Shown one piece after another: positions 386 through 34,744 of a DNA stretch of 64,000 bases (position 1 is its first letter; each line of letters starts with the position of its first letter). The stretch covers positions 1,364,001 to 1,428,000 of the forward strand of contig CM068778.1 of the NCBI GenBank assembly GCA_035084275.1, in the 5' to 3' direction. A program made the position numbers and the translations under genes. The stretch comes from Hydrolagus colliei. Its lineage: Eukaryota. The notes under the pieces were generated by a model. That model saw only the letters and a program-made list of their open reading frames with translations. It made no database searches and had not been told where the DNA came from.

Positions 386-499
386 CTGTTGCAAAATTGT
401 TCCTAGCATTGGTAATATTTGTAGTTTCATTTGTAGGGAGTTGTCCTGGCTGTCCATCTCTCACTTCCAAGTTAATGGGAATTAATTGTTTCCTTATGT
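386..499 (-). CDS. Spacer exon S8 [39 protein letters not shown]
   Basis: 114 nt, tgtttccacag acceptor like that of S5; weak GTCGGA donor. Confidence 0.55.
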
Positions 500-3400: not shown

Positions 3401-6400
3401 CAATTTATTATAGTTTATTTTTGAGGAAACTTGCCCTGACCTGATTGGATTCGAAACGCAGGTCTCACGCTTGTAAGGCAAGTGCTCTAACCACTGAGCT
3501 ACAGGCCTCCTAATACGCTTACAACAACAAAATTACATTGATGGAGCACCTTTCACGTCAGGGGACGTCCCAAGGCGCCGAACAGTTGGTTCAGGACCCG
3601 AGCGGGTGTGGGGGAGGTCGGGGTTGGGGGAAGGGGAAGGAGCATAGGAGAGGGAGGAGAGTTTGGAGGGGAGCAGAAGCCACGGTCAAAGAGGAAAGTC
3701 TTGAGACCAGCCTTGAAGGAGGAAAGGGAGGAAGCGAGGCAAAGGGATTGCGGGATGGAGTTCCGGAGTGTGGGGGCAGAGAGGCTGAAAGCCCAGCCAT
3801 CGATGGTAGGGTGGTTTGGGTGGGGCACATGAAGCAGGCCAGAGCCCGCTGAACAGTGGTGATGGGCAGGCTGATAGAGAGACAGCAGGTGGGAGAGATA
3901 GGTGTGGGCCACGCCGTGAATGGCCTTGAAAGTGAGGACAATGATTTTGAATTCAACCCTCTGGGAGATGGGGAGCTAGTGGAGACAGGTGAGGGTGGGA
4001 GTGATGTGGTCGCGGAACCTAGTGTGGGAGAGTACACGAGCTGCAGAATTCTGAATAATCTGCAGCTTGTGAAGGGAGGAGCTGGGAAGGACAACGAGGA
4101 GAGAGTTCCCGTAGTCGAGCCTAGATGTGATGAAAGCGTGGATGGGTGTTTCAGCAGCATGGGGGATGAGGTAGTGGTGGAGTCTAGCGATGTTGCAGAG
4201 GTGGTGGAAGGCTGTACAGGTCATGGTGCGGATTTGGGGGAGGAAGGATAGTTCGGGGTTGAACGAGATGCCCAGATTCCTGACTCGCTTTGAGAGGAGA
4301 GAGCAGCTTTGAATGCTGATGGTGCCAGCGCCTGAGGTGTGGAGGCTCTGATGCAAGCCGATCAGGAGGGCCTCCATCTTGTTGATGTTAGTTGGAGGAA
4401 GATGTCCCTCGTCCAGGACTCAATGTCGGACAGACATGCAGTGGTCCTGGAGTGGAGGGTGGAAGCGGAAAGGTACAGTTAGGTGTCATCCCCATAGATG
4501 TGGAAATTTACCCCATGTCTGCGGATGATGCCACCAAGTGGGAGCATGTATAGGGTGAAGAGCAGGGGGCCAAGGACAGAGCCCTGGGGAAGGCCGCATG
4601 TGACTGCGAGGGCTGGAGGAAAAGCCATTGGAGGAGACGAAGTGAAGGCGGTGTGAGAGGTATGACCGGAACCAATCAAGGGCAGAGCCTTCAAGGTTGA
4701 GGAGGGAGGAGAGGCGGTGGAGGAGGATTGCGTGGTCTACGGTGGCAGACAGATCGAGGAGGATGAGGAGTCAGAGGGAACCCTGGTCGCAGATGGTCAG
4801 GATGTCGTTTGTCACCTTGACCAGAGCAGTTTTACTGCTGTGGGCAGCACGGAAACCCGATTGGAGGGGTTCGAAAAGTGAGTGGGTTGAGAGGAAAGAG
4901 CGGAGTTGGGAGGCAACCACTCTTTCGAGGACTTTGGACAGGAATGGGAGGTTGGAGATGGGCCGGTAGCTTGAGAGCTTTGATACATTGAGGGAAGGTT
5001 TCTTTCGGATGGGGGTGATCGTGGCAGTTTTGAGGGGAGTGGGAACGGTGCCAGATGAAAGGGACAGGTTAATAGTGGTTAAATACTATTAGTAGTCGTA
5101 TTGTTATTAATATTATAATCCAAGTGGCTGGGTTGGAATTATGCTTTGTTTTAACCAATGCATTCAAAATCTCTTATTATGAAATATCTAACCAGCTGCA
5201 ACTGGGTCCCCATTTTGAATTTTGGAAATATTTATTGTTCCATATTGCATATAGATATAATGTGCAGTGAATTTCGTTGAACATCCCGTTGGTAACAGGA
5301 ATGACTTGATGAGCTGAATTGCTTCCTGCTGTTTGGCAATCGCTATAACTGAGATCAAAGTGAAGCCTGCCACTCTGAGCATCACATCCCTGTGTCTTAC
5401 CTTTGTAGCAAGTGTAACGATAAGTCTGGTTGCAGTCGCTGTTAAACCACAGACCGTTGTTCATAGCAACACAGATCACAGAAGACACATAGACATTTGC
5501 CTCCTCTCTCCAGTGTGTGTAGTTGAATGTGTCTCCGTTTGTCCATGTCCACCCAACATTGGACTCATTATTATAGTACAGTCCAATCCAAAGAGGGATG
5601 TCAGGGGCAAACATCTGAAATATGAACCTGAGCTCCTCTGGATTCCGGATGCTGACAATATCAGTGTGATGATTGCGGCAGTAATCCCGAGCTTCAGTCC
5701 AGTTTTTCTGCTGGTTGATATGTATATATTCTCTGTCCTGGGGTTTTACAGGTTGAGACACATCTGAGAAAGAAAAACGATAATAATAATACTCGCATTT
5801 GACAAATCACTTCAAGATGTCTATAAGCATTTCATAGAATTAACTCTTAAGATCCTTGTCCTTCTATTCAAACTCCAACACCCTCTTGACCATCTCTTAC
5901 AATTTACGCTCTATCCCATTCCCTGTCTGAATGCTCTGCACTTCTAGTTGACTTGTTCTGTCCATCTCATGAAGGAAACAATAATGAAAAACAACTTGTG
6001 TAGTTGAAAATTTCCCAAATGCTTGTAATTTACCGATTTTATCTTTGTAGCAAGTAAACTGGTACGTTTGATTGCAGTCATAATGAAGCCATAGAGCATT
6101 GATCACAGCCACACAGATTCTGGGGCTTGGATTATCTGGTTCCGGAAGTTTCCAATGGTCATTGTTGAACTTGTCTCCATTTATCCACTTCCAGCCTGCA
6201 TTGGGTTGCTTATTATCATGGTACAGTCCAATCCAGACAGGTGCATCTCCTCTAAACAGCTCAGATATCCCCTCCTGCTCCTTTGGGTCGCTGATGCTGG
6301 CAAGATCTGTATAGAAATTGCGGCAGTGATCACGGGCGTCACTCCAGTTTTTTGTTTGGTTGACTCTGTGATATGTTCTGTCCTGTTGCTTTGTTCTCGG

Positions 6401-9400: not shown

Positions 9401-12400
9401 ATTATTATTGGGAGGTGAATTCTCTAAATACTGTCTTATAGGATTCTGCCTGACAGAATATGTTTGCGTGTCTGGACAGAACTGCCGGTCGTATTAACAT
9501 CAGGCTTCCCAATCTTACCTTTGTAGCACATAAACCGGTATGTGTGATTGCAGTAATCGTCGAACCACGTCTCGTTCCCTACAGCCACACAGACCATAGC
9601 TTCTTGATAACCATTAGGCTCCTTCTCTTTCCAGTGTGTATAATTGAAGTTGTCTCCATTGATCCACTTCCAACCTGTTTCAGAGTGGTTATTATTAAAG
9701 AGTCCGATCCACAAAGCAAAGTCTCTGTAAAACATCGAAGTGAAGATTTTCTGCTCCTCTGGGTTCCGAATGCTGACAAGATCTGTGTAATGCTTGCAGC
9801 AGTAATCCCGCGCATCAGACCAGCTTTTCCTGTGGTCGATAAGGTGATACCCTCTGTCTGCAGGATTAATTTCTGGTGAGAGAAGGTAACATGAGAAAGT
9901 AAGGTATCCAAATACCATTTAGTCCTGTTATCCAAAAGATCTGATACATTTCAAATTTGAATGTCTGAGCTCTCCCAAACCAATGCCAATTCTCTCAGAA
10001 CTATTATAGAGCCCATACCCTCAAAATGTGCATTGAATCTCAGTATTTTCTTCCATTCCCACCACTAACACGATCCTTACATTCATAGATCACATTCCAA
10101 GTTACCTTTTCCTCTACTATACAAAATATTCTTATCTTTTAGACTTTGATTTCAATCAATGATTCTTCATCTCTCTTATCTCTCTTGACCTGTACCAATA
10201 TGCCTTTAAAAAGTTAGAGGGTCCTTTCTCTGTGACAATATCTTGGTCCTCACATTCAAAGCCCTCCTTGGCCTTGCCCCACTCTACCTCTGCATCCTCC
10301 TAACCCCTGACAACCTGTCTGCCCCCTGTGCTCAACAGGCTCCGGCCTCCTCCAGATCCCCTGACCCACCCGCCCCACTATTAGTGACTGAGTTTTCAGC
10401 CTCTCTGTCCCTAACCTCTGGACTGCCATCTCACAGTCCCTCTGCCTCGTCCCTCTCTGGCCTCCTTCAAGTCCCACCTCAAGACCCTCCTCTTTGATGG
10501 TCCCATTGGTCATCCCAAATCCCCCCCCCTCCCCCCCCCCCCCCCTTTCCCTCCACCCTCCCTGTCCCTGACCCCAGCTCAGGTCTGAAACAACGACTGT
10601 CCAGTGCCTTAGGACATCCTCCTGACATGAAAGGTGCTGTACAAGTGTAATTTTGTTGTTATTGTGTGAAGGTTGCTATATCAATGTACATTTACACTAA
10701 CTTAGCATGAGAGATCCTATATAAATGCCTGATATTAACATTATGGATGGGAAAATCTATATCACTATTTTTAATGTCTAAAATATGTTCTTATGCCCCG
10801 TAAAGTATCACCATCCCCACATGTCCTGTCCCAAACTATATATTGTATCCTGATATACTACTGTATTTAGTAACAGAAGTCTATCTAACTTATTCTTGGG
10901 AACATTTTAGATAGACTTCTGTTATTTTCAAAAATAAATTAGATAGATTTCTGTTGCTAAATAATATCAACACTTTCCTGCCCAATCTTACCTTTGTAAC
11001 AAGCGAACCTGTAAGTCTGATTGCAGTAGTTATCAAACCACAGACTATTGCTCATAGCAGCACAGATCACAGATCCTGGTGGAGCATTTGGCTCCTTGTA
11101 GTTCCAGTGTGTGTAGATCAATTCATCACCGTTTATCCACTCCCATATGATTGTAGTGTAGTTATTGTTGTACAGCCCAAGCCAGAGTGGTGTGTCTTTA
11201 CTGAACAGTTGAGTTATATATATATTCTCCTCTGCGCTCCGAATGCTGACAATATCCGTGTAGTAAGTGGTACAGTAACTGCGAGCTTCAGCCCATCTTT
11301 TTCTTGTTTCAATGCGGTAATACTCTCTTTTCAGGGCATTGATGGCTAGGGATGTATCTTGTGAGAGAAGATTACTTTAGTAAATAGTTCAAGCTCTGCA
11401 AGGTCCCAGTTCCCCCAATAGGAGTGATTTTGAGATCGATATTTTTAATTTTCAAATCCCTTTGTCTTGCTCTGTCCCATCTTATCCAATCTCTTCTGAG
11501 AATCTACCCTCATGAAGGGTACTTTATCAATACAAGTTGTTGTTCAGTAATATTACACTTTGCTCTTCCCACCTGACCATTGTTGATCCTTTTAACCCCC
11601 TACCAACCTGCCCCCTCCGCTTAGCAGACTCTGGCCTCCTCCATGTCCCCTGAACCACCCGCCCCACCATTAGTGAGCGAGCCTTCAGCCCCTCTGCCCC
11701 TAACCTCTGGAACTCCATCCCACAGTCCCTCCACCCCTCCCTGGTCATTGGTGATCAAATATTCAGCCACTATCAATCAATCAGCAAAAATCCCCTCACT
11801 TCCTTTCTCCACGCCTTCAAATCTTTCTTCAAACTATCTGTTGTCATTATTTTGGGCAACACCATCAAAACTTCCCTTTTTGCCCTTTATCATACCTGTA
11901 AACTGTTTTGAGATATTTATTCTCCATGAAAAGGGATGGCACAAGTCACAACTGTTGATGGGAATAACCAAGACCCAATAAGGGTTCGATTGAACTGAGA
12001 TTCTAATCAGTTGAGCAACCACTTATATTTTGTAATTCTGTCGGCTTGTTGACCCACCTGTACAGAAAATATAGTGACCGAGAAACAGTGACCAAAAGAG
12101 ATAATTAAATTAAAGATATAAACATAAAAGAAAGAGAAAACCTAGAAGAAATGCTAAAAGAAGAAGAAAAAAATTGTATTTGATAGCATCATAATGAAAT
12201 TCATGCACCAAATAGCTTCCACCTACAATGTGACTCCAGGAACGCAGTTCCACATCACATTACACATCACCCTCACTGAACTCATCTCTGTAACAACTAA
12301 AGCTTTGGTAAGTTTGATGGCAGTAATCATCAAATACATAGACCATTGCTCACAGCATCAAAGACCAAGGCTCCTGAGTCCATTTTGTCTCCTCCACTTT

Positions 12401-15400: not shown

Positions 15401-18400
15401 CCTGCTGCAGTATTATTTTGAGAGATGGGAGAGTTCAAAGTTGAAAATGGAGTTGTTTCTGTTGCAAAAACGATTGGGGTTTGTGGAGACGGGGATGGAG
15501 TCAGTGACACTTGAAGGTCTGGATACAGAAGGAACATCATACATTGTTATTGACATGGCATTGAAATTGCTACACAACAAACAGTAAGTTTTTTGCCCTC
15601 TCATACTCGCTTTGAGGCTAGCAAAGACCTTGGCAGAAATGCTCTTCATCTTGATAATCACCCTGTGCAAGTAGAGTTAATCACTCTTGTTATTCAAAGT
15701 TCCAATAGCTTCTTCTTCATGTTCCTAGTTGGACACAACCTTGGGCAAGGTTACTCCACATGGTAATGATTCCTCAAAAACAATAATAAAGTCGTCTTTT
15801 CAATCCATGACTGTTTGTCATCACTGCGAGCAGTTGGCTTCTGCTTTCACTGACTATGCCAACAATTCAGCACCTTGGGATGTCTTCTAGATTTCAAAGG
15901 CGCTTTACAAATATAACTTTGTATTGTATTGTAGGTGAATATGTGGAAAATGATGGACAATCTCTCAGTATTTATTTTCCTAAATTATCACGTTGGAACA
16001 GTTGGTCCAACTTTCCTTCTTCTCCTTAGAAATGCAGATGCTTGTGTTGCTGGGTTGGCCAAACAGAATTTGTAGAGCAACAGTCTTGATCCTTGCTTCC
16101 TGATTAATAATGATAGCTTAATGTACAGACATCCAATCATACTACCAATAATTTCTTCTTCTTAATGCATGACTGTTTTCTTAAAACAAGCAATTGTCTT
16201 CTCATAACATAGTAATCACTTCACCATGGTGAGGATAGTAATATCTCCACTGTTAGAAGATATTGGTGCTAGATTTCACTGATCTAACAGTTCCCCGTGT
16301 GAAATCATAACCCCGTGTTATGACATACTCAGCCATACCACAACAAGGATAGAAACTATTTCAGACCTGACAAATTTCTTCAAAGCCAAGTTGGTCATTT
16401 CAAACCATGACTGTTTGTGGGACGCTGCTGTGTACAATTGGCTGCCGCATTTTGCCCACAAATACAGTCAATTCACTTTACAGTGTATTCTGTGCAGCGC
16501 TTTGAAACGTCGATAAGACGTGAAAAGCGCTACATAAAATGTGAGGATTAGTAAACATATAGAATAATATACAGTAAATATCCAGAGCATATACTGTGAA
16601 GTGCTTTGAGATATCTATAAGATGCAAAAGAGTTATATCAAATGTAAGTATTATTCTTATTCTTATATTTGTTGATGCCATATTGTGAACTTGTTCTCAA
16701 TAGAGCAACTTGTTACCTGCTTCAGTATTATTTTGAGAGATGGGAGAGTTCATAGTTGAATTTGGAGTTGCTTCTGTTGCAAAAATGATTGGGGTTTGTG
16801 GAGACAGGGATGGAGTCGATGGCACTCGAAGGTCTGGATACAGAAGGAAAGTCATACATTGTTATTGACATGGCATTGAAATTGCTATACATCAAATATT
16901 AAGCTTTTATAGTCCACTCATACACGCTTTGAGGCGAGCAATAAGACCTTGTCAGAAATGATGTTGATCTTGATTACCAGCCATATGCAAGTAACTTTAA
17001 TCAATCTTGTTATTCAAATTTCCCATAACTTTTTCTTTATGTTCCTAGTTGGGAAAAACCTTGGGCAAGTTTCCTTACTTCGCATGGTAATGATCGCTCA
17101 AGAACAATAATAAAGTTGTCTTTTCAATCCATGACTCTTTGTGATTCCTGCGAGCAACTGGCTTCTGCAGTTCACTGACAAATATGCAGACAATTCACTT
17201 GATGGCATACTCTGTGAAGTGCTTTGAGATGTCTACAAGATGCAAAAGAGTTATATCAAATGCAAGTATTATTCTTAATATATTCTTTGATGCTATATTG
17301 TGAACTTGTTCCTAATAGAGGAATGTGTTACCTGCTGCAGTATTATTTTGAAAGGTGGGAGAGTTCATAGTTGAAATTGGAGTTATTTCTGCTGCAAAAA
17401 TAATTTGGGTTGGTGAAGATGGTGATGGAGTCAATGGCACTTGAAGATCTGGATGCAAAACGAACATCATACATTGTTATTGACATGGCATTCAAATTGC
17501 TATACATCAAATATTAACAACAACAACAACAACAACAATGCACTTTTATAGCACTTTTCACGTTGGGAGGATGTCCCAAAGCGCTGAACAGTCAGGTCAT
17601 ATCCCGAGCGGGGTGGGGGATGGTCGGGGTAGAGGGAAGGCAAAGGAGAGTGGGAGGGGGGAAGAGTTAGTGGGGGAGCCGAAGGCACGGTCGAAGAGGA
17701 AGGTCTTCAGACCAGACTTGAAGGAGCAAAAGAAAAACAAAGAAGACAATGTTAGCGAGCAACTTAGGGAGATTAATATTAGTAAAGAAATGGTTTTAGG
17801 TAAATTGTCAGGTCTTAAAACCAATAAATCAGCTGGGCCTGATGGCCTGCATCCCAGAGTTTTAAAGAGGTGGCGACTGAGATAGTGGATGGCTTGTCTA
17901 TAATCTTCCAAAATTCTCTGGATACTGGAAAAGTTCCCATTGATTGGAAGATTGCAAACATAACTCCACTATTTAAGAAGGGTGGGAGAGAACACATGGG
18001 GAACTATAGACTAGTTAGTCTGACATCAGTGGTAGGGAAAATTCTTGAGTCCTTAATTAAAGACATCGTTATGGGATACCTGGAAGACCATAACAAGATT
18101 AGGCAGAGCCAACATGGCTTTACAAAGGGAAGTCATGCTTAACTAATCTTTTAGAGTTTTTTGAGGAAATATCTAGCAGGTTGGATAGGGGGGAACCAGT
18201 AGATGTGGTATATTTAGATTTTAAGAAGGCATTTGATAAAGTGCCACACAAAAGTCAAAGCCCACGGGATAAATGGGAACATATTAACATGGATAGATGA
18301 GTGGCTAACTGGTAGAAAACAGAGAGTAGGGATAAATGGGTCATTCTCGAATTGGCAGGATGTAACTAGTGGAGTGCCACAAGGATCAGTGCTTGGGCCT

Positions 18401-21400
18401 CAGCTATTTACTATTTACATAAATGATCTAGACAAGGACATTGAATGTAATGTGTCTAAATTCGCGGAAGACACTAAACTAGGTAGGAGAGTGAGCTCTG
18501 AGGATGATGCAAAAAGATTGCAATGGGATTATAGATAGGCTAGGGGAGTGGGCGAGAAGGTGGCAGATGGAATTTAATGTGGGGAAGTATGAAATTATTC
18601 ACCTAGGTAACAAAAATAAAAGAATAGATTATTTTCTAGAGGGGGAGAGGTTAGATAGTGTTAGTATTCAAAGGGATTTGGGTGTCCTTGTACATCAGTC
18701 TCAAAAAGTTAGTTTGCAGGTGCAGCAAGCAACTAAGAAGGCAAATGGCTTCTTAGCATTCATTGCAAAAGGTTTAGAGCACAAGAGTAGGCAAGTCTTG
18801 CTGCAACTGTATAGGGCCTGGGTGAGACCACACCTAGAGTATTGTGTGCAGGTTTGGTCTCCTTATTTAATAAAGGACATACTTGCCTTAGAGGGTGTGC
18901 AGTGTAAATTCACTAAGTTAGTTCCTGGGAAAAGGGGACTGACCTATAAGTTGAGTAAACTAGGGCTGTATTCTCTAGAGTACAGAAGAACTAAGGGAGA
19001 TCTTATTGAAACATATAAGATTCTTAAAGGGCTGGATAAAGTAAACAGTGAGGAACTGTTTCCCCTGGTAGGAGAATCTATAACCAGGGGTCATAATCTT
19101 AAAATTAAGGGTCAGCCTTTCTACAGAGTTGAGGAAACATTTCTTCACTCAGAGGGTTGTGAATTTATGGAATTCACAACCCCAGAAGGCTGTAGATGCT
19201 CAGTCCTTGAACATTTTCAAGGCTGAGACTGATAGATTTTAAAAAATAGAGGAATTAGGGGATAGGGCTGGTAATTAGCGTTAGGTCAGAAGATCAGCCA
19301 TGAACTTATCAAATGTCGGGGCAGGCTCAAGGGGCCAAATGGCCTACTGCTGCTCCTAATTCTTATGTTCTTAAAGGGAGGAAGCAAGGTGAAGGGGCTG
19401 CTGGATGGAGTTCCATAGTTTGGGAGCACAGAAGCTGAAAGCCCGGCCACCAATGGTTGGGCGGTTAGGGCGGTAGATGCGGAGCTGGCTTGAGTCTGCT
19501 GAACGGAGGGTGAGGGCGGCTGATAGGGAGACAACAGGTCAGAGGGATAGGTGGGGCATGGCCGTGAATGGCCTTGAAATTGAGGACGAGGATTTTGAAT
19601 TCGATTCTCTGAGTGAAGGGGAGTCAGTGGAGACGGGCGAAGGTGGGAGTGATGTTGTCGCAAAGCCTGCTATGGGAGAGTACACGAGCTGCAGAATTCT
19701 GAATGATCTGCAGCGTGTGAAGGGAGGAGCTGGGAAGGCCGACGAGGAGAGAGTTTCCATAGTCGAGCCTGGAAGTGATAAAGTCATGGATGAGAGTTTC
19801 AGCGGCGTGGGGGGTAAGGTAGTAGCAGAGTCTGGCAATATCGCGGAGGTGGTGGAAGGCTGTACTGGTCATGGTGGATGTAGAGGAGGAAGGATAGTTC
19901 GGGGTTGAACAAGACACCCACATTCCTGATTGGCTTCGAGAGGTGGAGAGAACAGCCTTGAACGCTGATGTTGTCAGCGCCTGAGGTGCGGAGGCACTGA
20001 TGTCAGCCAATCAGGAGTGGCTCTGTTTTATTGACATTGAGCTGTAGGAAATTTGCCCTCGTCCAGGACTCAATGTCGGACAGATATGCAGTCAGAACAC
20101 TAGTGGTCCTGGAGTCGAGGGTGGACGCGGAGAGGTAGAATTGGGTATCAACCGCATACATGTGGAAATTTACCCCATGTCAGCAGATAATGTCGCCCAG
20201 GGGGAGAGTGTAGAGGGTGAAGAGCAGGGGGCCAAGGACAGAGCCTGGGAATGTTTTTAGCACTAAGCTTTCATAGTCCACTCATACTTGCTTTGAGGCG
20301 AGCAACAAGACCTTGTCACCAGCCCTATGCAAGTAGCTTTAATCACTCTTGTTATTCAAAGTTCACCTAACTTTTTCTTTATATTCCTAGTTGGGAAAAA
20401 CTTTCGGCAAGTTTCCTTACTTCGCATGGTAATGATCGCTCAAAAACAATAATAAAGTTCTTTTCAATCCATGACTGTTTGTCATTGCTACGAGCAATTG
20501 GCTTCTGCAGTTCACTGACAAATATGCAGACAATTCACTTGACCACATACTCTGTGAAGTGCTTAGAGATATCTACAAGATGCAAGAGTTATATCAAATG
20601 CAAGTATTATTCTTATTGTTATATTCGTTGATGCCATATTGTGAACCAGTTCCCAGTAGAGGAACTTATTACCTGCTGCAGTATTATTTTGAGAGATGGG
20701 AGAGTTCATAGTTGAAATTGGAATTGTTTCTGTTGCAAAAATTATTTGGGTTTGTGGAGACGGCGATGGAGTCAATGGCACTTGAAGTTCTGGATACAGA
20801 AGGAATGTCATACATTGTTATTGACATGGCATTGAAATTGCTATACGTCAAATATTAAGCTTTTATACAAAAACAGAAGCAGTTGGGAAAACTCAGCAGG
20901 TCAGGCAGCATCCATGGAGAAAGGAAAGTGAGTCAACGTTTCGGGTCCACAACCTTCCGTCAGAACTGGTTGTTTTGATTAAGCTTTAATAGCCCACTCA
21001 TATACTCGCATTGAGGCGAGCAACAAGACCTTGTCAGAAAAGCTCTTAGTCTTGATATTCAGACCATTGCAAGTGGCTTTAATCACTCTTGTTATTCAAA
21101 GTTCCCATAACTTTTTCTTTATGTTCCTAGTTGGGCACAAGCTTGGGCAAATTTCCTTACTTCACATGGTAATGATCATTCAAAATCAATAATAAAGTTG
21201 TCTTTTCAATCCATGACTGTTTGAGCAATTGGCTTCTGCGTTTTACTGACAAATATATAGACAATTCCCTTGACCACATATTCTGTGAAGTGCTTTGAGA
21301 TGTCTAGAAGAAGCAAAAGTTATATCAAATGCAAGTATTATTATGATTATTATATTCGTTGATGCCATATTGTGAACTTGTTCCTAATAGAGGAACTTGT

Positions 21401-24400
21401 TACCTGCAGCAGTATTATTTTGAGAGATGGAAGAGTTCCTAGTTGAAATTGGATTTGTTTCTGTTGCAAAAATTATTTGGGTTTGTGGAGATGGCGATGG
21501 AGTCAATGGCACTTGAAGGTCTGGATACAGAAGGAACATCATACATTGTTATTGACATGGCATTGAAATTGCTATAAATCAAACATTAAGCTTTTATAGC
21601 CCACTTATATCATACTCGCTTTGAAGCAAGTAAAAAGGCAGAAATGCTCTTAAAGTTGATATTCAGACCTATGCAAATAGAGTTAACTTGTTAACTCTTG
21701 TTATTTCAAAACTCCCATAGCTTCAGCCTTATGTTCCTAGTTGGGGAAAAAAAAACCTTCTCTAGCTCCCTCAAATCCTAACCACTACCTCCCTATTTCT
21801 AACCTGCCCTTCCTTGCCAAAGCACTCGCACGCATTGTTGCCAACCAACTCCGCGCCAACTTCTCCTCCCACTCCCTTTTTGAACCCCTCCAGTCCAGTT
21901 TCCGCCTTGCCCACAGTACAGAGACTGCACTTCTGAAAATCACAAACAATGTCCTCTCTCTCTGTGACCAGGGCTCCCTCTGTCTCCTTATCCTCCTGGA
22001 CCTGTCCGCTGTGTTTGACACAGTTGACCACACCATCATCCTCCACCGCCTGTCCTCCGTCATGCACCTCAGTGCGAACGCACTTGCCTGGTTCGAGTCC
22101 TACCATTCGAACCACCAGCAGTGCACCTCAACGAATGGCTTTTCCTCCCGCTCTCACTCAGTTACCTGCAGGGTACTCCAAGGATCCATCCTTGGCCCTC
22201 TCCTCTTCCTCATTTATATGCTCCCTCTTGGGCACGTCATCTGCAGACATGGGATATACATCCACATATATACAGATGACACCCAACTCTATTTCTCCAC
22301 CTCACTTTGCCACCCGCAGTCCCCTGATGTTCTGTCAGCCTGCTTGGCAGACATTAGGAGCTGGATGAGCGTGAACTTCCTGCAGTTGAATGTTAACAAG
22401 ATGGAATCCATATTCTTTGGCTCCCTTCAACATCTTAAATTGCACGGCTCTCACCTCCTCCACCTTCCCAGCCTGCTCCTAAAACTCTCCGAACCCATGC
22501 GCAACCTAGGCGTCAGATTCGACCCCCAACTGTCCTTCCTCCCCCACATCCGGTCCCTCATCAGCACCGCTTTTTTCCACCTCAGATGGATCCCCGTCTC
22601 TGGCAATATCTCGCCCCAAAAGCCGCTGAAACTCTGGTCCAGGCCTTTGTCACCTCTCAGCTGGACTATTCCAATGCCCTTCTTGCCGGTCCCCCCTCCA
22701 TCACAATCTGTCAAATCCAACTCATTCAAAACTCTGCCGCCCGCATTCTCACCCGCACCAAACTTTGTTCCCTCATTACCCCAGTCCTTGCCAGACTTCA
22801 CTGGCTCCCTGTCCCAGAGAGGATTAATTCAAAATCCTCAACTTTGTTTTCAAATCCCTCCACTCCTCTGCACCCCCCTACCTCTCTGACCTCCTCTCTC
22901 CTCAAACCAGCACCCATTACCTTCGCCCCACCAGGTCTGGCCTCCTTCTTTGTCCCCTAAATCCTCTGCTCCACCATCAGTGGCTGTGCCTTCAGCCACT
23001 ATGCCCCAAGTCTCTTGAATTCCCTTCCTCACTCCCTTCACCTCGCCCCTTCTCTTCCCAGTTTCAGGTCTCAATTAAAGACCTTTCTCTTCGACCATGC
23101 CTCCAGTCACCTTGCTGCCCCTGCCCCTGGCTCAGTCCCGGGATCCATTGTTGTGAAGCGCTCTGAGACGCTGTCTGGCATGGAGGGCACTATATAAATT
23201 GAAGTTGTTGTTGTTGAAAAACCTTGGGCAAGTTTCTTTACTCCACGTGGTAATGATCGCTCAAAAACAATAATAAAGTAATCTTTTCAATCCGTGACCG
23301 TATGTTATTGCTGCGATCAATCGGCTTCTGCAGTTCACTGACAAATATGCAGACAATTCACTTGACCACATACTCTGTGAAGTACTTTGAGATGTCTAGA
23401 AGGCGTGAAAGAGTTATATTGAATGCAAGTATTTTTATTATTAATAACACAAAATATCCAGAGCATTGTTGCATTGCAATGTGTGTCTCTTTTACCACCT
23501 TTGAAACCATCATGGAAGACCTGAGACAGGTTACCAAGAAGTGTGATTGATGGCAAGTCATTGGACTCATTTAAGAAAAAAACAGATTGATTCTATAACG
23601 CTAAGATGGTAGATTGAGATTCTTGAGGCATGAGCTCAGATAGACAGTGTATTTTATCAGCTTTATGCAATCAATCAATATTCCTCAATGAAAAGTGCTA
23701 CAAACGTGAAAGTTCTGGGCAATGAACAACAACATTATATTTATAGAGCACCGTTCACGTCGGGAGGACGTCACAAAGTGCTGAAAATCAACTTTGGTTG
23801 ACCTCTTGGGTAAATGCTGCTATTGTCAACGTTGAAGAGAATCCCAGAATTATGTTTTAAATAAGTAAAGTGAAAATAACTCAGTATTTTACAATGCGAG
23901 ACAGCGAAACGTAAGATCACAATCAGTAATTACCTTTCTGGCAAATAAATTGATACGTTTGATTGCAGAAATCATCAAACCACAGCCCTTTGGTTACAGC
24001 CACACAAACTGGAGAACTTAGATAACCTTTCGGCTCCAGAAATTTCCAGTGTGCATAACTAAATTGTTCTCCTGTTGACCACATCCAGTTGGTTTTAGAG
24101 CCCTTTTTATTGTACAGCCCAATCCAGAGAGGTACATGTTTTTCAAACTGTGGAAAAACGAGCTGGTTCTCCTCAAAGCTCTGAATGCTCATCAAATTTG
24201 TATAGTGGATGCGGCAAAACATCAGGGCTTCAGTCCAGTTTTTCTCTTGATCAATCAGATAATACATCCTGTTCAATGACTTATTCTTCACTCCAGGACC
24301 TAATGAGAAGCCGTGATACAAAGATTCAAACTTCAGTGGAATTCATGTAAAGATGAACTGATATAAGATACTTGTCCTTTTTATGCAATTTAACCACTCC

Positions 24401-27400
24401 CTTACTTTAATCAGACTTTAATCTGTAGCCCATCCCCTTCACTTTTCTGATGTGTTCTTCTCTGTCAGACTCACTCTTTCTTCCCTCTCTCCCTGACACC
24501 TCCCTGATCCATCATGTCTTTACTCAATTGAACCATCCCAATGGTTTATTTTCCTTTGTGTCTACTAAATTTGTCAGGTAAGGATTTTCTTCAAGTAATG
24601 TGGTAGCTCGTCACTTGAGATAAATTGTTAGCTGATTCTGGGTTCCTTTGACAGACAAAAAGTTTAAAACGTCTTTACTTTACCTGTTACAAAATCAATT
24701 GTGGATTTTGAAGGCTTGACTGTTGGTTTGCTGGGAATTGCAGATATCTGAAAGTCTGTGGAAACAGACAGAATGTATTTATTTGGTTGCGTATGCAACT
24801 ATGTTCTTTACATTGCATATCCTACATATGAGTAAGGGAGTATATATTTCGACATGAGAGTGGAGGTGAATGCTGTGTGGAATGTGTTGTGGGGAGATGA
24901 AGGTGAAACCTGTTGAGAATTGTTGACACTCTACAGAAGTTCTCACCTGTTGCCAAATTGGTGCTATTTAGAGTTATGCCTGGAGTTGTTTTTGGAGTAA
25001 AGGCTGATGGTTCTGCAGATAGCTGGTTGGTTGGTAAAGATTTCTTCCCACCTGTGGAGACATTGCACATACTATTGCACATACATACTGCAGATTGTTC
25101 TTCTGGCAGTTTGCTTGGTGTACTGTCCAGAGAGAGGGAGAAGTAAAGCAAGACAAAGTGTGAAAAAAAAGAATAATAAGGTACAAATTCATCAAACACT
25201 TTCATCTAGATTTGTCCACTAAATTTTCATTCACTTGTTACCTTTCATTCAAAGCCCTCTCTGAAAATTGCCTCTTCCATCCTGGTTAGGTTTCCACCGT
25301 TAAATATCACTCTTTTCCGGTCTGATTTCTATCAAATCTATAGAAGACTTCCTGATGGTCATCTCATATAAGATGCTTTATATTGGTGCAAGCATTTGGT
25401 ATCCTTTAATTATATAACAACAACAACAACAACTTCGATTTATATAGCACCCTCCACGCCGGACGGCGTCTCAGAGCGCTTCACAGTAGCGGATCCCGGG
25501 ACCGAGCCAGGGGCAGGGGCAGGAAGGTGACCAAAAACACTGTCGAGGAGAAAGGTCTTCAACTGTGACCTGAAGCTGGGAAGAGAGGGGGTGAGGCGAA
25601 GCGAGTGAGGAAGGGAGTTCCAGAGCCTCGGGGCATAGTGGCTAAAGGCACAGCCGCCGAGGGTGGAGCAGAGGACTCGGGGGACATGGAGGAGGCCAGA
25701 CCCAGAGGAGCGAAGGCAGCGGGTGCTGGGTTGGGGGGAGAGGAGATCAGAGAGATAGGGGGGTGCAGAGGAGTGGAGGGATTTGAAAACAAGGGTGAGG
25801 ATCTTGAAGTCGATCCTCTCTGGGATAGGGAGCCAGCAAAGTCTGGCAAGGACTGGAGTAATGGGGCAGCAAAGCTCAGAGCGTGTGAGTATGCGGGCGG
25901 CAGAGTTCTGGATAAGCTGGATTTTGTGGATTGTGGTGGAGGGGAGACCGGCGAGGAGGCCATTGCAATAGACCAGACAAGAGGTGACAAAGGCATGGAC
26001 CAAGGTTTCGGCGGCTTTTAAGGTGAGGTACTGCCAGAGACGGGCGATCCGTCAGAGGTGGTAGAAGGCAGTGCTGTTGACGGACTGGATGTGCGGGAGG
26101 AAGGACAGTTGAGGGTCGAACTTGATGCCAAGGTTGCGCACAGGTTCGGAGAGTTTTAGGGGCAGGCCGGGAAGGTGGAGGAGGTGAGAGCCGTGCGAAT
26201 GGAGACGTTGACGAGAGCCAAGGAGTATGGCCTCCGTCTTGTCAACATTCAGCTGCAAGAAATTTTTGCTCATCCAGCCCCTGATGTCTGACAGGCAGCT
26301 GACAGAACATCGGGGGACTGGGGGTCACAAAGTGAAGTGGAGATAGAGTTGGGTGTCATCCATGTACATGTGGAAGTGTGCCCCATGTCTGCGGATCACA
26401 TCCCCAAGAGAAAGCGTATAGATGAGGAAAAGGAGGGGGCCAAGGATGGATCCCTGGGGTACCCCACAGGTAACTGGGTGAGTGCGGGAGGAAAAAACAT
26501 TTGTGGAGATGTACTGCTGGCGGTTTGTGAGGTAGGACTCGAACCAGGCGAGTGCGGTCCCACTGAGGTGGCTGGCGGAGGACAGGGGGTGGAGGAGGAT
26601 GGCGTGGTCGACTATGTCAAAGGCAGCCGACAGGTCCAGGAGGATAAGGAGGCAGAAGGAGCCCTGGTCACTAGAGAGGACATCGTTTGTGACTTTCACA
26701 AGCGCAGGCTCTGTACTGTGGGCAGGGCGGAAACCGGACTGGAGGGGTTCGAAGAGGGAGTGGGAGGAGAGGTGGGCACGGAGTTGGTTTGCAACAACAC
26801 GTTCAGTGCTTTTGAGGAAGGACAGGTTTGAGATAGGGCGGTAGTGGCTGGGGTTTGAGGGATCTAGGGAGGGTTTTTTTCTCAAAATTAAATTAAAGGA
26901 AGCAGGAAACAAAGAAAGAGAGTGAATGAGAGACAGAATGAGAGAGAGAGAGATAGAGCTTCTGAAAGAGAAAGACAGAGAGAGAGACCAAATGAACAAA
27001 CAAACAACAACACAACCAGATTACATTTATAGAGTGCCTTTCATGTCGGGAGGTTGTCCCAAGATGCTGAAACAAATGAACAAATGAATTGAAAGAAAGG
27101 AAGACAAAACGGGAAAGATAAAAATAACTTCTATACAAGCATCCAGTTCAGCAAACATGGATTGTATTCCTTTCAATTTAGAAGGTGATTCAATTGGCTT
27201 GTTTAAGGTGATAAAAGATTGTGTAGTAACAGAGAAGCTATTTCCTGTGGTGGGGATCCAAAACAAGGGGTTAGAATCTTAAAGTTAAAACCAGGCGATT
27301 TAAGAGTGAAATTAGGAAGCATTTTTTTCACTCAAAATGTGGTAGAAATTTGGAACCCTCTCTCCAAAGGCTGTGGACGCTGGATCCATTCCATTCACAC

Positions 27401-30337
27401 CTTCAAATGTGTAGTTAATAGATTTTTGGCAGGTTACCATATTAAGGGATATGGAGAAAAAGTGGAAACTTGGATATGACATGATTATTTGAGGTACAGA
27501 TCAGCCATTATCTAATTAATTGGTGGAACAGGCTTGAAGGGCTGAATGGGTATTCCCGTTACTATACTCTTACGTTTCTCTGTTCCTAACCATCAGAATT
27601 ATTTACTTTCGATTTCTCTTCTTGGGCTTTCAATTGCAAAGGAATTTTTGCAGATAAGCCTCCTGAAATTATGATTGAAGCATTCAACAACAACAAAGTA
27701 CAACAAAATTACATTTATAGAGCGCCTTTCACATCAGGAGGACATCCCAAGGCCCTGAATTCAGCTCGATTGGAAGAGTTGGCAGCAGGATAGGCAGACT
27801 GTCCTCCTGTTCCGTAATTGAACATGACTCTTGGGAGGGTCCATACGGCTACACTTACCTGTGTAGCACATGAACTCGTATGTCTTATTGCAGTAGTCAT
27901 CGAACCACAGGCCATTGTTCACAGCCACACAGACGTCAGACGTAAGGTAGTCATTTGGCTCCATATGTTTCCAGTGTGTGTAGTTGACCTCCTCTCCATT
28001 TGTCCACATCCACGCAACAGTGGAACCGTTTTTACTGAACAGCCCGATCCAGAGAGTACGATCTCCGATAATCAGCTGAGATATGCGCTTGGCATCCTGT
28101 GTACTCTGGATACTGACCAGATCCATGTATTGATCTCGGCAGTAATCCCAGGCTTCAGTCCAGTTTTTCAGTTGCTCGATTGGGTAATATACTCTGTCCA
28201 CAAGTTTATTCCTCGAAGCCCAAACTAGTGAAGAAACATCACAGCAGTGACCATTTGTAGATCCAAATTTCATTACAATAACAACAACAAAATTACAGTT
28301 ATAGAGAGCTTTTCAGGTGTTAAACACTGAAAACACATTACCTTGACATCCCTTTGTATTGGTACTTCGTCCTACCTCAGTAAACTCTAAACAGAAAACT
28401 CTGTTTTCCTACAAAAGTCTTTATGTAATTTATTCCTTTTTTTCGTCCCATCATTGGTCGCCAAACTTTCAGCCACCATTTCCAAATTCTGCGGAAGTAT
28501 TGTATTTCCAAATCTCAGCCTTACTGCCATCACTTTCACCCCTACCCGCTTTTGAAAGATGTCTCTCTTAACACCACTTCTGTTATTGTTGGTCTCATCA
28601 GCAGCCTTAAATATTTTAGCTAAAGTGCTACACAACAACCAACAACAAAAATTATAATTGTATAGTGGCTTTCACATCAGGAGGGCGTCCCAAGGCACTG
28701 GACAGTCAGTGTTTCAGACACGAACTGAGGTCAGAATTGGGGAAGATGGCACAGTCTTCAGATGGGATTTGAAGGAGGCCAGAGAGGGGATGAGGTGGAG
28801 GGATTGTGGGATGGAATTCCAAAGGTTGGGAGCACAGTGGCTGAAGGCTCGCCCGCTGATAATGGGACGGGTGGGTCTGGGGCATGGAATAGCCCGGATC
28901 CTACTGAGAAAGTGGACAGGTTGGTAGGGGTTAGGAGGTTCTAGAGGTAGGGTGGGGTTTAAAGGTGAGACAAGTCCAGTGCGTGCATTGAACTCCAGAT
29001 CTCCATTTGGGGACTGGTATCAACGGAAAGAAGTAACAGATGTCAAATTATTTGTCAAAAACTAAGGTACATCACTATGTAGCCCCAGAATCAAAACTAT
29101 TGCATATCAATGAATAAACGTATGGGCAGAAATATGTAAATTTCTGAGGAAATAGTTGCAAAGCGAGGTTATTTCAAACCTGCAGGTTGAGGTTTTTCTG
29201 ATATAGCAGGTTTTGTGGGCTCTGAGGACTTGATTTCTGGTTTGATGGTGGTCGCAGCATTTTCATAATCTGTGAAAGTGGAATGAGCAAAACAATTACA
29301 AAACAAATAATAAAATTAATAATCTTTGCATTTGATATAGTGCCCCATTATGATATCGAGACGAGTCAAAGTGCTTAACACTGTAATGTACTGTTATATT
29401 TTCTGGGTAAAACCCGGCTCCCAATTGCACACAGAAGTGTCTTGACAAACAGTTATGAATGACTAATTGGTATGCTTGGAAAGCAATCCACCAATTGACT
29501 AACTCTTTACCTTCATAACAGATGAACCAATAAGTTTGATTGCAGTACTCATCAAGCCACAGCCCATTGTGCAAAGCCACACACATCTCAGAAGCTGGAT
29601 AATCATTCATCTTTTTATCTTTCCAGTTAGTATAATTGAATGTGTCTTCATTGGTCCATTGCCATCCATCAGTGGTTAGATTATTGTTGTACAACCCAAT
29701 CCAATAGGATTCTCCATCATTAATCATCTGAGCAGTGATATTAGTTTCCTCTGGGCTCCGGATGCTGACCAGATCCACATAGTGAGTCCGGCAGTGATCC
29801 AGGGCTTCAAACCATTTCTTCTTTTCATTAATTGCGTGGTACTTTCTGTCCAAGGATAGAACAGTTTGGGGCAGAGCTGCAAAGATGCAATCGCAACAAT
29901 AACAAAGATTGCATTACATAGCGCTCCTCATGTGGGTTAGTGCCCCAGCACACTTGGCAATATAAGAATACTAATCCTTACATTTGATATAGCGCTTTTC
30001 ATGTCTTCTAGATGTCTTAAAGTGCTTCGCAAAATATACTGTAAAGTGAATTGACTACATATTTGTGGGCGAAACGTGGCAGCCAATTCGGCACAGCAGC
30101 GTCCCACAGACAGATTTGAGTGACCAATTTATTATTGCCTTTTGTTTTCGAGAGATTATTATTAGGCATGTGGAGTAAGGAAACTTGCCCAAGATTTTGC
30201 CTTTCCAAGAATCAAACTCGGGTCACTCGCTGGTAAGGTGAGTGCTCTAAATACTGAGCTACAGGACTCCAGATGATAAAAATAGACTCACCTTGAGTAA
30301 GAAGGAGGAGGGAGAAGAGAACCAGCATTTTACTCAT
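386..30337 (-). CDS. Multi-C-type-lectin-domain / mucin-spacer gene (mannose-receptor-like annotation class); 3' end lies outside the window
   Basis: Leader exon plus 10 intact CTLD exons (WxxAxxxC..DL.SI..WIGL..W.W..C.A....W....C...Y.F.CY) and short spacers, all with AG/GT ends in phase 1; no TM exon or confirmed stop found in the window. Confidence 0.85.
1046..1417 (-). CDS. CTLD exon C10 (no EPN/QPD; WLS)
   Basis: 372 nt, tcttcacag/GTAAGA; matches ORF 972..1508. Confidence 0.9.
1590..1695. repeat. Compound tetranucleotide microsatellite (GATT/GGTT/GATA)n
   Basis: Read directly from the sequence. Confidence 0.9.
2175..2189 (-). CDS. Candidate 15-nt microexon (D)STIT(G)
   Basis: ttaattttgccag/ACAGCACCATCACTG/GTAAGC, phase 1-1; could be chance. 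Confidence 0.3.
3250..3512 (-). mobile_element. tRNA-derived SINE (Deu-domain-like body, L2-type tail)
   Basis: Head TAGCTCAGTGG...GTTTCGAATCC; body caattggctgccg; tail gaagcgctttgagatgtc...gctatatcaaatgcaag. Confidence 0.75.
3525..5070 (-). mobile_element. L2 LINE 3' fragment (degenerate reverse transcriptase)
   Basis: [38 protein letters not shown]. Confidence 0.85.
5401..5763 (-). CDS. CTLD exon C9 (EAN + WFN)
   Basis: 363 nt, tttctcag/GTAAGA; matches ORF 5177..5761. Confidence 0.9.
6034..6411 (-). CDS. CTLD exon C8 (EPD); canonical donor mutated, in-frame GT 9 nt downstream
   Basis: Open hand translation [17 protein letters not shown]...[11 protein letters not shown]; tcttattag acceptor; GTAAAT at 6033. 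Confidence 0.75.
6629..7030. mobile_element. Non-autonomous Tc1/mariner-superfamily MITE
   Basis: Terminal inverted repeats CCGTAAAT...TATAAGGCGCAC at both ends, flanked by TA on each side. Confidence 0.8.
7327..7692 (-). CDS. CTLD exon C7 (ELN + WFN)
   Basis: 366 nt, ctcaccag/GTAAGA; matches ORF 7310..7705. Confidence 0.9.
8058..8159 (-). CDS. Spacer exon S7 [35 protein letters not shown]
   Basis: 102 nt, ctttaacag/GTAAAA, P/S/T-rich, phase 1-1. Confidence 0.75.
9040..9378 (+). mobile_element. CR1 3'-end fragment
   Basis: Similar by eye to the 3' end of the CR1 at 19020-19370; ends gggccgaatggcctccttctgtgccgtaa. Confidence 0.65.
9519..9872 (-). CDS. CTLD exon C6 (EPN + WFD)
   Basis: 354 nt, ctcaccag/GTAAGA; matches ORF 9436..9918. 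Confidence 0.9.
10992..11357 (-). CDS. CTLD exon C5 (EPN + WFD): [29 protein letters not shown]...YRFACYKG
   Basis: 366 nt, ctcacaag/GTAAGA; hand-translated open frame, absent from the ORF track. Confidence 0.9.
12286..12625 (-). pseudogene. Decayed CTLD pseudo-exon (boundaries approximate)
   Basis: Remnants DYHRI..NWAE / [10 protein letters not shown] / KDTPLW / FDDYCHQTY with deletions, stops and no GT donor. Confidence 0.7.
12914..13030 (-). CDS. Mucin-like exon M6 [40 protein letters not shown]
   Basis: 117 nt, tgtatccag/GTAACA, open. Confidence 0.75.
13952..14083 (-). CDS. Spacer exon S6 [45 protein letters not shown]
   Basis: 132 nt, gtgactgcag/GTACAA, phase 1-1; resembles the M exons (IVFSTEETP vs IIFATETTP). 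Confidence 0.65.
14643..15008 (-). CDS. CTLD exon C4 (EPN + WVD)
   Basis: 366 nt, gatcatcag/GTAAAA; matches ORF 14611..15000. Confidence 0.9.
15402..15518 (-). CDS. Mucin-like exon M5 [40 protein letters not shown]
   Basis: 117 nt, tgtatccag/GTAACA, open. Confidence 0.75.
16717..16833 (-). CDS. Mucin-like exon M4 [40 protein letters not shown]
   Basis: 117 nt, tgtatccag/GTAACA, open. Confidence 0.75.
17332..17448 (-). CDS. Mucin-like exon M3 [40 protein letters not shown]
   Basis: 117 nt, tgcatccag/GTAACA, open. Confidence 0.75.
17515..20250 (-). mobile_element. L2 fragment interrupted by a CR1 insertion
   Basis: L2 3' end 17515-17727 resumes at about 19375; [10 protein letters not shown] motif. 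Confidence 0.8.
17728..19372 (+). mobile_element. CR1 LINE 3' fragment (degenerate reverse transcriptase)
   Basis: [52 protein letters not shown]. Confidence 0.88.
20673..20789 (-). CDS. Mucin-like exon M2 [40 protein letters not shown]
   Basis: 117 nt, tgtatccag/GTAATA; lies within ORF 20563..20811. Confidence 0.75.
21404..21520 (-). CDS. Mucin-like exon M1 [40 protein letters not shown]
   Basis: 117 nt, tgtatccag/GTAACA, open, phase 1-1. Confidence 0.75.
21745..23215 (+). mobile_element. 5'-truncated L2 LINE
   Basis: [37 protein letters not shown]; GTT-repeat tail. Confidence 0.88.
23934..24299 (-). CDS. CTLD exon C3 (EPK + WFD)
   Basis: 366 nt, tctcattag/GTAATT; matches ORF 23923..24321. 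Confidence 0.9.
24684..24755 (-). CDS. Spacer exon S5 [25 protein letters not shown]
   Basis: 72 nt, tttccacag/GTAAAG, phase 1-1. Confidence 0.7.
24947..25051 (-). CDS. Spacer exon S4 [36 protein letters not shown]
   Basis: 105 nt, tctccacag/GTGAGA, P/T/S-rich, phase 1-1. Confidence 0.7.
25415..26880 (-). mobile_element. 5'-truncated L2 LINE
   Basis: [40 protein letters not shown]; GTT-repeat tail. Confidence 0.88.
27591..27662 (-). CDS. Candidate spacer exon S3 [25 protein letters not shown]
   Basis: 72 nt, aatttcag/GTTAGG, open in phase 1-1. Confidence 0.45.
27859..28224 (-). CDS. CTLD exon C2 (EPN + WFD)
   Basis: 366 nt, ttcactag/GTAAGT; matches ORF 27761..28273. Confidence 0.9.
28342..28386 (-). 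CDS. Candidate short spacer exon S2 [16 protein letters not shown]
   Basis: 45 nt, ttctgtttag/GTAATG, open in phase 1-1. Confidence 0.5.
29180..29269 (-). CDS. Spacer exon S1 [31 protein letters not shown]
   Basis: 90 nt, ctttcacag/GTTTGA, open in phase 1-1, P/T/S-rich. Confidence 0.75.
29511..29876 (-). CDS. CTLD exon C1 ([14 protein letters not shown]...WFICYEG)
   Basis: 366 nt, tttgcag/GTAAAG, 4 core Cys, WIGL. Confidence 0.9.
29975..30272 (-). mobile_element. tRNA-derived SINE, same family
   Basis: Same head, body and tail. Confidence 0.7.
30292..30337 (-). CDS. Lectin gene signal-peptide exon [15 protein letters not shown](G)
   Basis: ATG, hydrophobic core, 46 nt ending in phase 1 at a GTGAGT donor. 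Confidence 0.8.
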
Positions 30338-34451: not shown

Positions 34452-34744
34452 CACAGTGAGAGAGATTGACTGAAAGCTCACACATAAACCTCTCTTCTCA
34501 CACACCATTCCTGCCGTCAACTCCCCTTCCCCCCCACCAATTAGCACCAACACCTGTGCTCTCTAACAAAGTGGAGTAATTTACACACAAAGAGAGGCAG
34601 AAAGCAATAGATCATCAAACTAGCCAAAAGAGAGATCTGAACAGCGGAGGGAGGGGGTGGGGTTGTGATGTGTGTGGAGCGTTTGACCTAGTTTAGAGCA
34701 TAGAGTACAACTGATATTTGAGGTTGGGTAAACTAGCAGCAAAC

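Follow-up and report, generated by a model that had tools for sequence, protein, structure and literature searches.

What kind of gene is an array of C-type-lectin-like domain (CTLD) exons that stands beside a T-cell receptor beta (TRB)-like region in a cartilaginous fish? We addressed this question for a stretch of 64,000 nucleotides from Hydrolagus colliei (NCBI GenBank assembly GCA_035084275.1, contig CM068778.1, positions 1,364,001 to 1,428,000), hereafter the window, in whose coordinates all positions are given. The array lies between positions 386 and 30337. The initial annotation had read it either as one very long lectin with its domains arranged like beads on a string or as a Dscam-like cassette array giving many combinations. 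With a probability of roughly two in three (0.68), we conclude that the array is a single gene encoding a secreted, glycosylated chain of at least ten CTLDs with Ser/Thr/Pro linkers.

The whole CTLD-array gene lies on the minus strand, and the window contains no N runs. Its leader exon (30337-30292, minus strand) provides an ATG and signal peptide in 15 codons and ends at a strong phase-1 donor (CAAG/gtgagt). A scan from 31.5 kb to 0.3 kb returned this exon as the sole signal-peptide-like exon with a phase-1 donor, and tblastn and blastn of the leader across the array region found no second copy. Further leaders in the array, which the initial annotation had named as a sign of several separate genes, were therefore not seen, and the single leader supports the beads-on-a-string arrangement. 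Downstream of it we found ten stop-free stretches with a WIGL core and a four-Cys pattern, and all ten CTLD exons matched Pfam Lectin_C over its full length (E values of 4e-15 to 8e-22). Joining the leader, the ten CTLD exons and 12 spacer exons (23 exons in total) yielded 5,038 nt and 1,679 codons with no stops; the translation contains 47 N-glycosylation sequons. All internal exons have AG/GT borders, phase 1-1 and a length divisible by 3. The splice borders and Pfam matches thus bore out the claim that one leader feeds ten intact single-exon CTLDs, as the joined-exon check did for the claimed phase and length of the internal exons. The leftmost exon of the gene in the window (499-386) closes with a phase-1 donor, so the gene extends past the left window edge.

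The CTLD exons, which we delimited by the best acceptors and conserved donors, are 354-378 nt long, and all are on the minus strand. Their products share 42-59% pairwise identity, in agreement with the earlier statement that they differ strongly from one another. CTLD1 (29876-29511; 366 nt, phase 1-1; Lectin_C E value of 2.7e-18) has its orthologue in domain 1 of the Callorhinchus milii model P0277 (76% identity; SH-aLRT branch support of 99). An AlphaFold2 (AF2) model of CTLD1 reached a pLDDT of 75 and aligned with solved CTLDs from many groups, among them MCL, DCAR2, CD23 and LOX-1, at TM scores of 0.70-0.78. The EPN motif is present in CTLD2 (28224-27859; 366 nt), which pairs with P0276 domain 1 and P0277 domain 2; in CTLD4 (15008-14643; 366 nt), which pairs with P0276 domain 3; in CTLD5 (11345-10992; 354 nt), which is 85% identical to P0128 domain 1; and in CTLD6 (9872-9519; 354 nt), which has five Cys residues. 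Splice borders, Lectin_C matches and tree position define CTLD3 (24299-23934; 366 nt), CTLD7 (7692-7327; 366 nt), CTLD8 (6411-6034; 378 nt) and CTLD9 (5763-5401; 363 nt). In CTLD8, the conserved donor GT has become AT, and our model uses the next GT, 9 nt downstream, which keeps phase 1. CTLD10 (1417-1046; 372 nt) falls within the holocephalan clade at a position that the tree does not resolve. Position 9918 carries an ATG that shares the frame of CTLD6 and opens a peptide resembling a signal peptide (9877-9918, minus strand); this peptide is probably the chance translation of the acceptor polypyrimidine tract.

The 12 spacer exons measure 105, 72, six times 117, 132, 102, 114 and 114 nt. We found them by a phase-1-to-phase-1 exon scan, by tblastn with the resulting peptides and by homologue-guided searches. 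The initial annotation had described about 14 short spacer exons in what it called a lectin/mucin cassette gene: the spacer exons themselves stood, the count fell to the 12 that we could support, and the linkers are mucin-like and Ser/Thr/Pro-rich (22-52% of residues) but, at 24-44 residues each, do not amount to a mucin domain. Following the minus strand from the leader, the 105-nt spacer (25051-24947; 44% Ser/Thr/Pro; AG/GT borders, phase 1-1) is followed by the 72-nt spacer (24755-24684), for which P0276 has a homologue, DFQISTTPSKPSAKPPKSINDFAK, between the same two CTLDs. The six 117-nt copies, recovered by the scan and tblastn, lie at 21520-21404 (copy a, ending in NNTAA), 20789-20673 (b), 17448-17332 (c), 16833-16717 (d), 15518-15402 (e) and 13030-12914 (f); the longest spacer run consists of five 39-residue repeats, or 195 residues. 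The 132-nt spacer (14083-13952) is 59% identical to the P0276 spacer that follows the orthologous CTLD. The 102-nt spacer (8159-8058; 52% Ser/Thr/Pro) ends in SQSNHLS, which matches the N terminus of C. milii P0272 just before its CTLD7 orthologue. One 114-nt spacer (1877-1764) is a candidate defined by its splice sites and open frame alone, with no homologue, and the other (499-386, ending in NARNNFAT) is homologous to a P0271 spacer ending in NTENNFAT.

Other Ser/Thr/Pro-rich phase-1 candidate exons were rejected, as they sit inside fragments of long interspersed nuclear elements (LINEs). LINE reverse-transcriptase fragments occur on both strands in the introns, at 3500-4400, 17500-20000, 21700-22900 and 25400-27000. 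The C-terminal peptide of C. milii P0276 is transposable-element-like and resembles a candidate exon of the window at 22240-22166, which hints at occasional exonization of LINE fragments. A repeat resembling a short interspersed nuclear element (SINE) (...QSIHFTVY...KCYTK...) is present in intron 1 (about 29980-30100, minus strand) and again at 40502-40774 and 47020-47316. This intron-1 sequence is also translated at the N termini of the Ensembl C. milii models P0281 and P0289; those models therefore read into introns.

To which family does this gene belong? When the conceptual protein was used as the query, six proteins stood out, with E values of 1e-144 to 1e-185 and the next match at 1e-105. 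These six are CTLD-only models of Scyliorhinus canicula, Scyliorhinus torazame and Leucoraja erinacea, carrying the names “macrophage mannose receptor 1-like” or “C-type mannose receptor 2-like”. When we compared a profile of the ten window CTLDs with 1.8 billion representative sequences, followed by cluster look-ups, the top per-domain scores (150-190 bits) came from C. milii, followed by Heptranchias, Hemitrygon and Mobula. Further searches yielded XP_007910097.1 (P0277), XP_007910316.1 (P0271) and a Chiloscyllium match, with about 18 C. milii proteins in all.

The C. milii models follow the window gene closely. P0277 consists of the leader, CTLD1, CTLD2, a spacer and CTLD3, the same chain as in the window; P0128 corresponds to CTLD5 to CTLD7 and P0272 to CTLD7 to CTLD9. 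Homologues of the 72-nt and 132-nt spacers stand at matching places in P0276, and P0271 contains the homologue of the 499-386 spacer, then one more CTLD and then a Lys-rich tail of 50 residues. CTLD1 to CTLD9 matched C. milii domains one-to-one, in the same order within each model and at 67-85% identity, a level that would fit another holocephalan or a paralogue missing from the annotation; within holocephalans, domain identity and order are conserved. We found no hypervariable loop between the window domains and their C. milii orthologues; the differences are spread evenly along the domain. The window leader is homologous to those of both P0277 and P0276/P0299, leaders that differ from each other and belong to at least two paralogous C. 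milii genes.

We also built a tree of 92 CTLDs from 122 columns, using a quick search and SH-aLRT support only, so that its deep forks are weak. It represented the mannose-receptor family by one protein, S. torazame MRC1, whose eight CTLDs split from all CTLD-only arrays with a support of 97. The chondrichthyan CTLD-only domains formed one clade (94), within which the holocephalan domains grouped together (88) and each of CTLD1 to CTLD9 paired with a C. milii domain (91-100). CTLD-only arrays from Amia, Latimeria and teleosts fell outside the chondrichthyan clade. The elasmobranch domains formed groups of their own; the arrays therefore underwent independent expansion in the two chondrichthyan lineages.

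The exon plan is also shared. At the skate (Leucoraja) locus, the RefSeq model maps each internal CTLD to a single exon of 351-363 nt; two longer exons (489 and 516 nt) comprise a CTLD plus extra sequence, and the second of these is the terminal read-through exon. Each skate spacer likewise occupies one exon (66-126 nt), and codons at the junctions are split 1+2. Because the skate shares this single-exon phase-1 plan, the modular plan is ancestral to the family. On sequence grounds, the window gene belongs with the CTLD-only arrays of cartilaginous fishes, a family separate from that of the mannose receptors.

The modules of the array differ in their fate. All ten CTLDs keep four Cys residues, the WIGL core, an open frame and splice sites at both ends. 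Beside them lie two decayed CTLD exons that were absent from the initial annotation. The first (12550-12287, minus strand; tblastn, 38% identity to CTLD5) has stops and has lost its N-terminal part. The second (2534-2457, minus strand) is a remnant of the C-terminal 26 codons with a stop, recognized by tblastn and translation; it resembles the end of domain 2 of P0271, which is intact in C. milii, and modules have therefore been lost as well as gained. That ten old paralogous CTLDs remain intact next to two decayed neighbors points to selection on the ten. Copies of the 117-nt spacer exon are 90% identical, compared with 65-70% for the flanking 150 nt and about 42% farther out, the profile of constrained exons in old duplicates. 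Together, the intact CTLDs and the spacer copies indicate genuine exons and not chance open reading frames. The spacer peptides themselves vary freely, as expected for linkers; codon changes among these copies numbered 116 non-synonymous and 44 synonymous. The two decayed CTLD exons and the six 117-nt copies represent module birth and death within one array.

In our preferred reading, transcription of the gene would proceed along the minus strand from one promoter and leader near 30.3 kb. The predicted product would have a signal peptide followed by at least ten divergent CTLDs, each from one phase 1-1 exon, and would be heavily glycosylated and secreted, with linkers irregularly spaced between domains, including the five 39-residue repeats in a row. 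The default mRNA would carry most or all modules serially, and a few isoforms might arise by in-frame skipping of a single CTLD or spacer, as in the RefSeq models of three elasmobranchs. The protein could then serve as a multivalent soluble binding protein of the pattern-recognition or agglutinin type.

Several points weigh against this reading. The gene model is built from genomic sequence and homology only, and the 3′ end of the gene lies to the left of the window, where a transmembrane exon is possible. The ancestral donor of CTLD8 is gone, and several of the spacers have weak donors (score of about 3). The Ensembl annotation of C. milii splits the region into many three-CTLD “genes” and does not recover one long gene. 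The evidence for isoforms consists of computational RefSeq models whose domains do not correspond one-to-one to those of the window. Finally, function is wholly inferred, with the WND Asn replaced by F, L or V in 10 of 10 domains and EPN present in 4 of 10.

A membrane-anchored type I multi-CTLD receptor, with its transmembrane segment and tail encoded to the left of the window, is an unlikely alternative, yet the one that the evidence treats most kindly. More exons must follow the phase-1 donor of the last window exon, and the best PDB sequence matches were LY75, FcRY, PLA2R and MRC2. These scores, however, add up contributions from many domains; no single stretch exceeded about 39 bits, similar to CD23. 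The window CTLDs branch apart from those of MRC1, and the chondrichthyan homologues that reach a stop codon indicate a different kind of end. The elasmobranch models close with the last CTLD (...CYKE, ...CYTG or ...CYTGE), P0271 ends in its Lys-rich tail, and no model that reaches a stop codon has a hydrophobic C-terminal segment. Because the models from sharks, rays and C. milii stop with no such membrane-spanning segment, the window product, whose own 3′ end is off-window, is likeliest to be secreted. The label “receptor” used in the initial annotation is doubtful for the same reason, as neither the elasmobranch homologues nor C. milii P0271 has such a segment.

Its claim that the gene does not have the mannose-receptor architecture fared better. 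The leader exon splices in phase to CTLD1 with no coding exon between them. We found neither a ricin B-type (Cys-rich) domain nor a fibronectin type II (FnII) domain at the N terminus of the window gene; the homologues contain Lectin_C only, PF00652 occurs in MRC1 matches, and PF00040 occurs in MRC1 matches and in no CTLD-only homologue. The branching of the CTLDs away from MRC1 agrees with this.

We consider it quite unlikely that the array comprises several small CTLD genes, each with its own promoter and leader. Ensembl annotates the homologous regions of C. milii with about 18 proteins of 240-410 residues, C. milii has two or more different leaders (in P0277 and in P0276/P0299), two array genes lie side by side in Heptranchias, and the ATG at 9918 is in frame with CTLD6. 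Against this, there is one signal-peptide exon and one leader homologue in 31 kb. Every CTLD exon starts and ends in phase 1 and therefore cannot stand alone: bounded by a phase-1 acceptor and a phase-1 donor, it needs splicing to start and finish a protein. RefSeq models in six elasmobranchs, together with P0277 and P0271 in C. milii, join several modules, whereas the Ensembl fragments carry intron read-through and truncated domains. The Ensembl three-CTLD models look like homology-based fragments, and the ATG at 9918 lies within the translated polypyrimidine tract.

Very unlikely, in our view, is a Dscam-like or combinatorial array in which the leader is spliced to varying subsets or to single exons, giving a large repertoire. 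The internal exons, all phase 1-1 and divisible by 3, would stay in frame in any subset; the CTLDs are divergent; and RefSeq isoforms in three elasmobranchs lack single modules. In S. canicula, isoform X2 is short of exactly one CTLD module of 118 residues; in M. birostris, X5 is missing a single 48-residue spacer; and the S. torazame isoforms leave out CTLD3, CTLD4 or a spacer. Phase-1 symmetry, however, is passed on when exons duplicate, and extracellular modules show it as a rule. In a crude test for docking and selector elements of the Dscam type, no intron-1 8-mer was complementary to more than two of nine CTLD-upstream regions, the number also reached in shuffled controls, and an equally crude search found no shared 9-mers in the introns around the CTLD exons. 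Homologous models string three to seven CTLDs in series, none has a single CTLD, and their isoforms, two to six in number, are one module apart. C. milii shares the identity and order of the domains, with no hypervariable loop. We examined one apparent leader-to-CTLD2 junction, in P0276, as a case of CTLD1 skipping and rejected it: P0299 has the same leader, and P0276 is a C. milii paralogue. This paralogue probably has no CTLD1 to skip, because in P0281 the intron-1 SINE-like sequence directly precedes a CTLD2-like exon. The Dscam-like reading of the initial annotation is thus unsupported, given the one-module isoforms and the lack of docking or selector elements and conserved intronic motifs in these tests. 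By contrast, the serial joining of CTLDs and spacers in shark, ray and C. milii RefSeq models, and the same exon plan in skate, favor the beads-on-a-string reading. Limited in-frame cassette skipping of single CTLD or spacer exons, giving a few isoforms, is plausible. A stronger version, in which regulated skipping of CTLDs and spacers yields tens to thousands of secreted isoforms from a gene 3.8 kb from the last TRB V segment, strikes us as a long shot; if true, it would amount to a recognition repertoire encoded in the germline and generated by splicing, in the oldest lineage of jawed vertebrates.

Least probable of all is a dying or dead array whose exons are open merely through recent duplication: two CTLD exons have decayed, CTLD8 is without its ancestral donor, the introns are full of LINE fragments and spacer codon changes are mostly non-synonymous (116 versus 44), but the CTLDs are old (42-59% identity) and yet keep their Cys residues, WIGL core, frames and splice sites, CTLD1 to CTLD9 each have a C. 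milii orthologue at 67-85% identity, and the spacer exons are clearly better conserved than their flanks.

If the single-gene reading holds, what might such a chain bind? The Ca2+ site 2 of a C-type carbohydrate-recognition domain (CRD) requires an EPN or QPD motif, then a Glu, and also the Asn-Asp of the WND motif. Aligning the window domains manually to these canonical motifs, we found EPN in four of the ten (CTLD2, CTLD4, CTLD5 and CTLD6). The WND position reads WFD, WLD, WVD, WFN, WLH or WLS, with the Asn replaced in every domain. The four conserved Cys residues and the CTLD fold are present, as judged by Pfam and the AF2 model of CTLD1. Since none of the ten domains retains the WND Asn, classical Ca2+-dependent binding of monosaccharides is doubtful, and the term “lectin” in the initial annotation is unproven in its sugar-binding sense; “CTLD” is the safer term. 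With the canonical site incomplete in every domain, the ligands of the predicted protein need not be Ca2+-bound monosaccharides.

The right part of the window holds the TRB-like region (41249-64000, minus strand), comprising a C-like exon, J-like segments and a V array. The V segments to the right of the gene had T-cell receptor V domains as their best solved matches, and their recombination signal sequence (RSS) consists of CACAGTG, a 23-bp spacer and ACATAAACC. On the minus strand, two J-like segments (YFGEGTRLRVLG and YFADGTKLIVLG) lie near 42.69 and 44.24 kb. The C-like exon (41249-41750, minus strand; about 41.6 kb) has an Ig C1-like start (...GTFVCFVSDFYPDTVEIEWKINN...), lacks the strand with the second Cys and meets a stop after about 75 codons; it may be truncated or pseudogenized. 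The V-segment array with 23-RSSs spans 45-64 kb (minus strand). Between 45000 and 64000, the V segments are very similar, many RSSs are identical, two V types alternate and CT-rich simple repeats are present, which suggests recent tandem duplication of a multi-kb unit. Downstream of the C-like exon there is one inverted TCR-beta-like V segment with a 23-RSS (34156-34473, plus strand), which, at a distance of 3.8 kb from the leader, is the nearest neighbor of the CTLD gene. It recalls mammalian TRB loci, in which the last TRBV is inverted.

The initial annotation had placed the gene directly beside TRB, which is true within the window. No V- or C-like sequence was found within 10 kb of the elasmobranch homologues, a reach that is short for such genomes. 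Instead, H3-like and H2A-like histone genes lie 3′ of the CTLD arrays in S. canicula and H. perlo (CM068675.1), the only two elasmobranch species in which we saw the 3′ neighbor. Heptranchias has its two array genes in tandem, and the S. canicula array gene spans 147 kb. A conserved link between CTLD arrays and TRB has no support within the 10-kb reach, and the adjacency in the window appears to be incidental.

On present evidence, the locus does not reveal a new diversification mechanism. Its interest lies elsewhere. Database names of the “mannose receptor-like” kind imply an endocytic macrophage receptor, whereas the architecture predicted here across cartilaginous fishes is secreted and CTLD-only, with single-exon modules and glycosylated linkers. 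For comparative immunology, the gene would add one more candidate chondrichthyan humoral recognition molecule, and it offers a clean case of exon-module evolution. We did not find a description of the CTLD-only array family in the literature, and papers on the shark-skin proteome and on catshark cartilage concerned other lectins only.

Among known systems, the mutually exclusive exon clusters of Dscam1 resemble the window gene in having tandem, homologous, divergent and in-frame exons that encode parts of an extracellular protein. They differ in that the window gene shows no docking or selector complementarity and its homologues string modules serially. The mannose-receptor family (MRC1, MRC2/Endo180, PLA2R1, LY75/DEC-205 and avian FcRY) shares the arrangement of 8-10 tandem CTLDs in one polypeptide and, by summed sequence score, provides the best solved-structure matches to the window protein; most CTLDs of this family also lack a complete sugar-binding site. 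Its members have ricin and FnII domains, whereas the window leader splices directly to CTLD1, and the window CTLDs are single-exon domains, some of them separated by Ser/Thr/Pro spacer exons.

CTLD-only arrays also occur in bony fishes. Examples are those of Danio rerio (753 aa), Triplophysa rosa (1,437 aa, 12 CTLDs), Amia calva and Latimeria (H3A5Y0), automatically named “MRC1-like” or “LY75-like”. Like the window gene, they have tandem CTLDs without ricin or FnII, and they share the N-terminal motif ...W(T/S)(E/D)A..YCR..(Y/H)TDL(V/A)(S/T)(I/V). Per domain, the window profile gave them roughly 60-85 bits, compared with roughly 30-55 bits for MRC1. In the sequences that we saw, however, their domains abut without Ser/Thr/Pro spacers, and many keep WND. 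The short “MManR-F” fragments of Fugu, which a Fugu CTLD census classed as MManR paralogues (PMC514892), may be the bony-fish counterpart of these arrays, a tentative link.

The closest relatives of the window gene are the chondrichthyan CTLD-only arrays, represented by automatic models such as S. canicula and S. torazame X1-X4, M. birostris X1-X6 and H. perlo XP_067829860/61. In these, as in the window, a CTLD directly follows the signal peptide, no Pfam domain other than Lectin_C is present and CTLDs from one clade alternate with short non-globular spacers. The elasmobranch models have four to seven CTLDs and domains without EPN, whereas the window gene has at least ten CTLDs and retains EPN in four of them.

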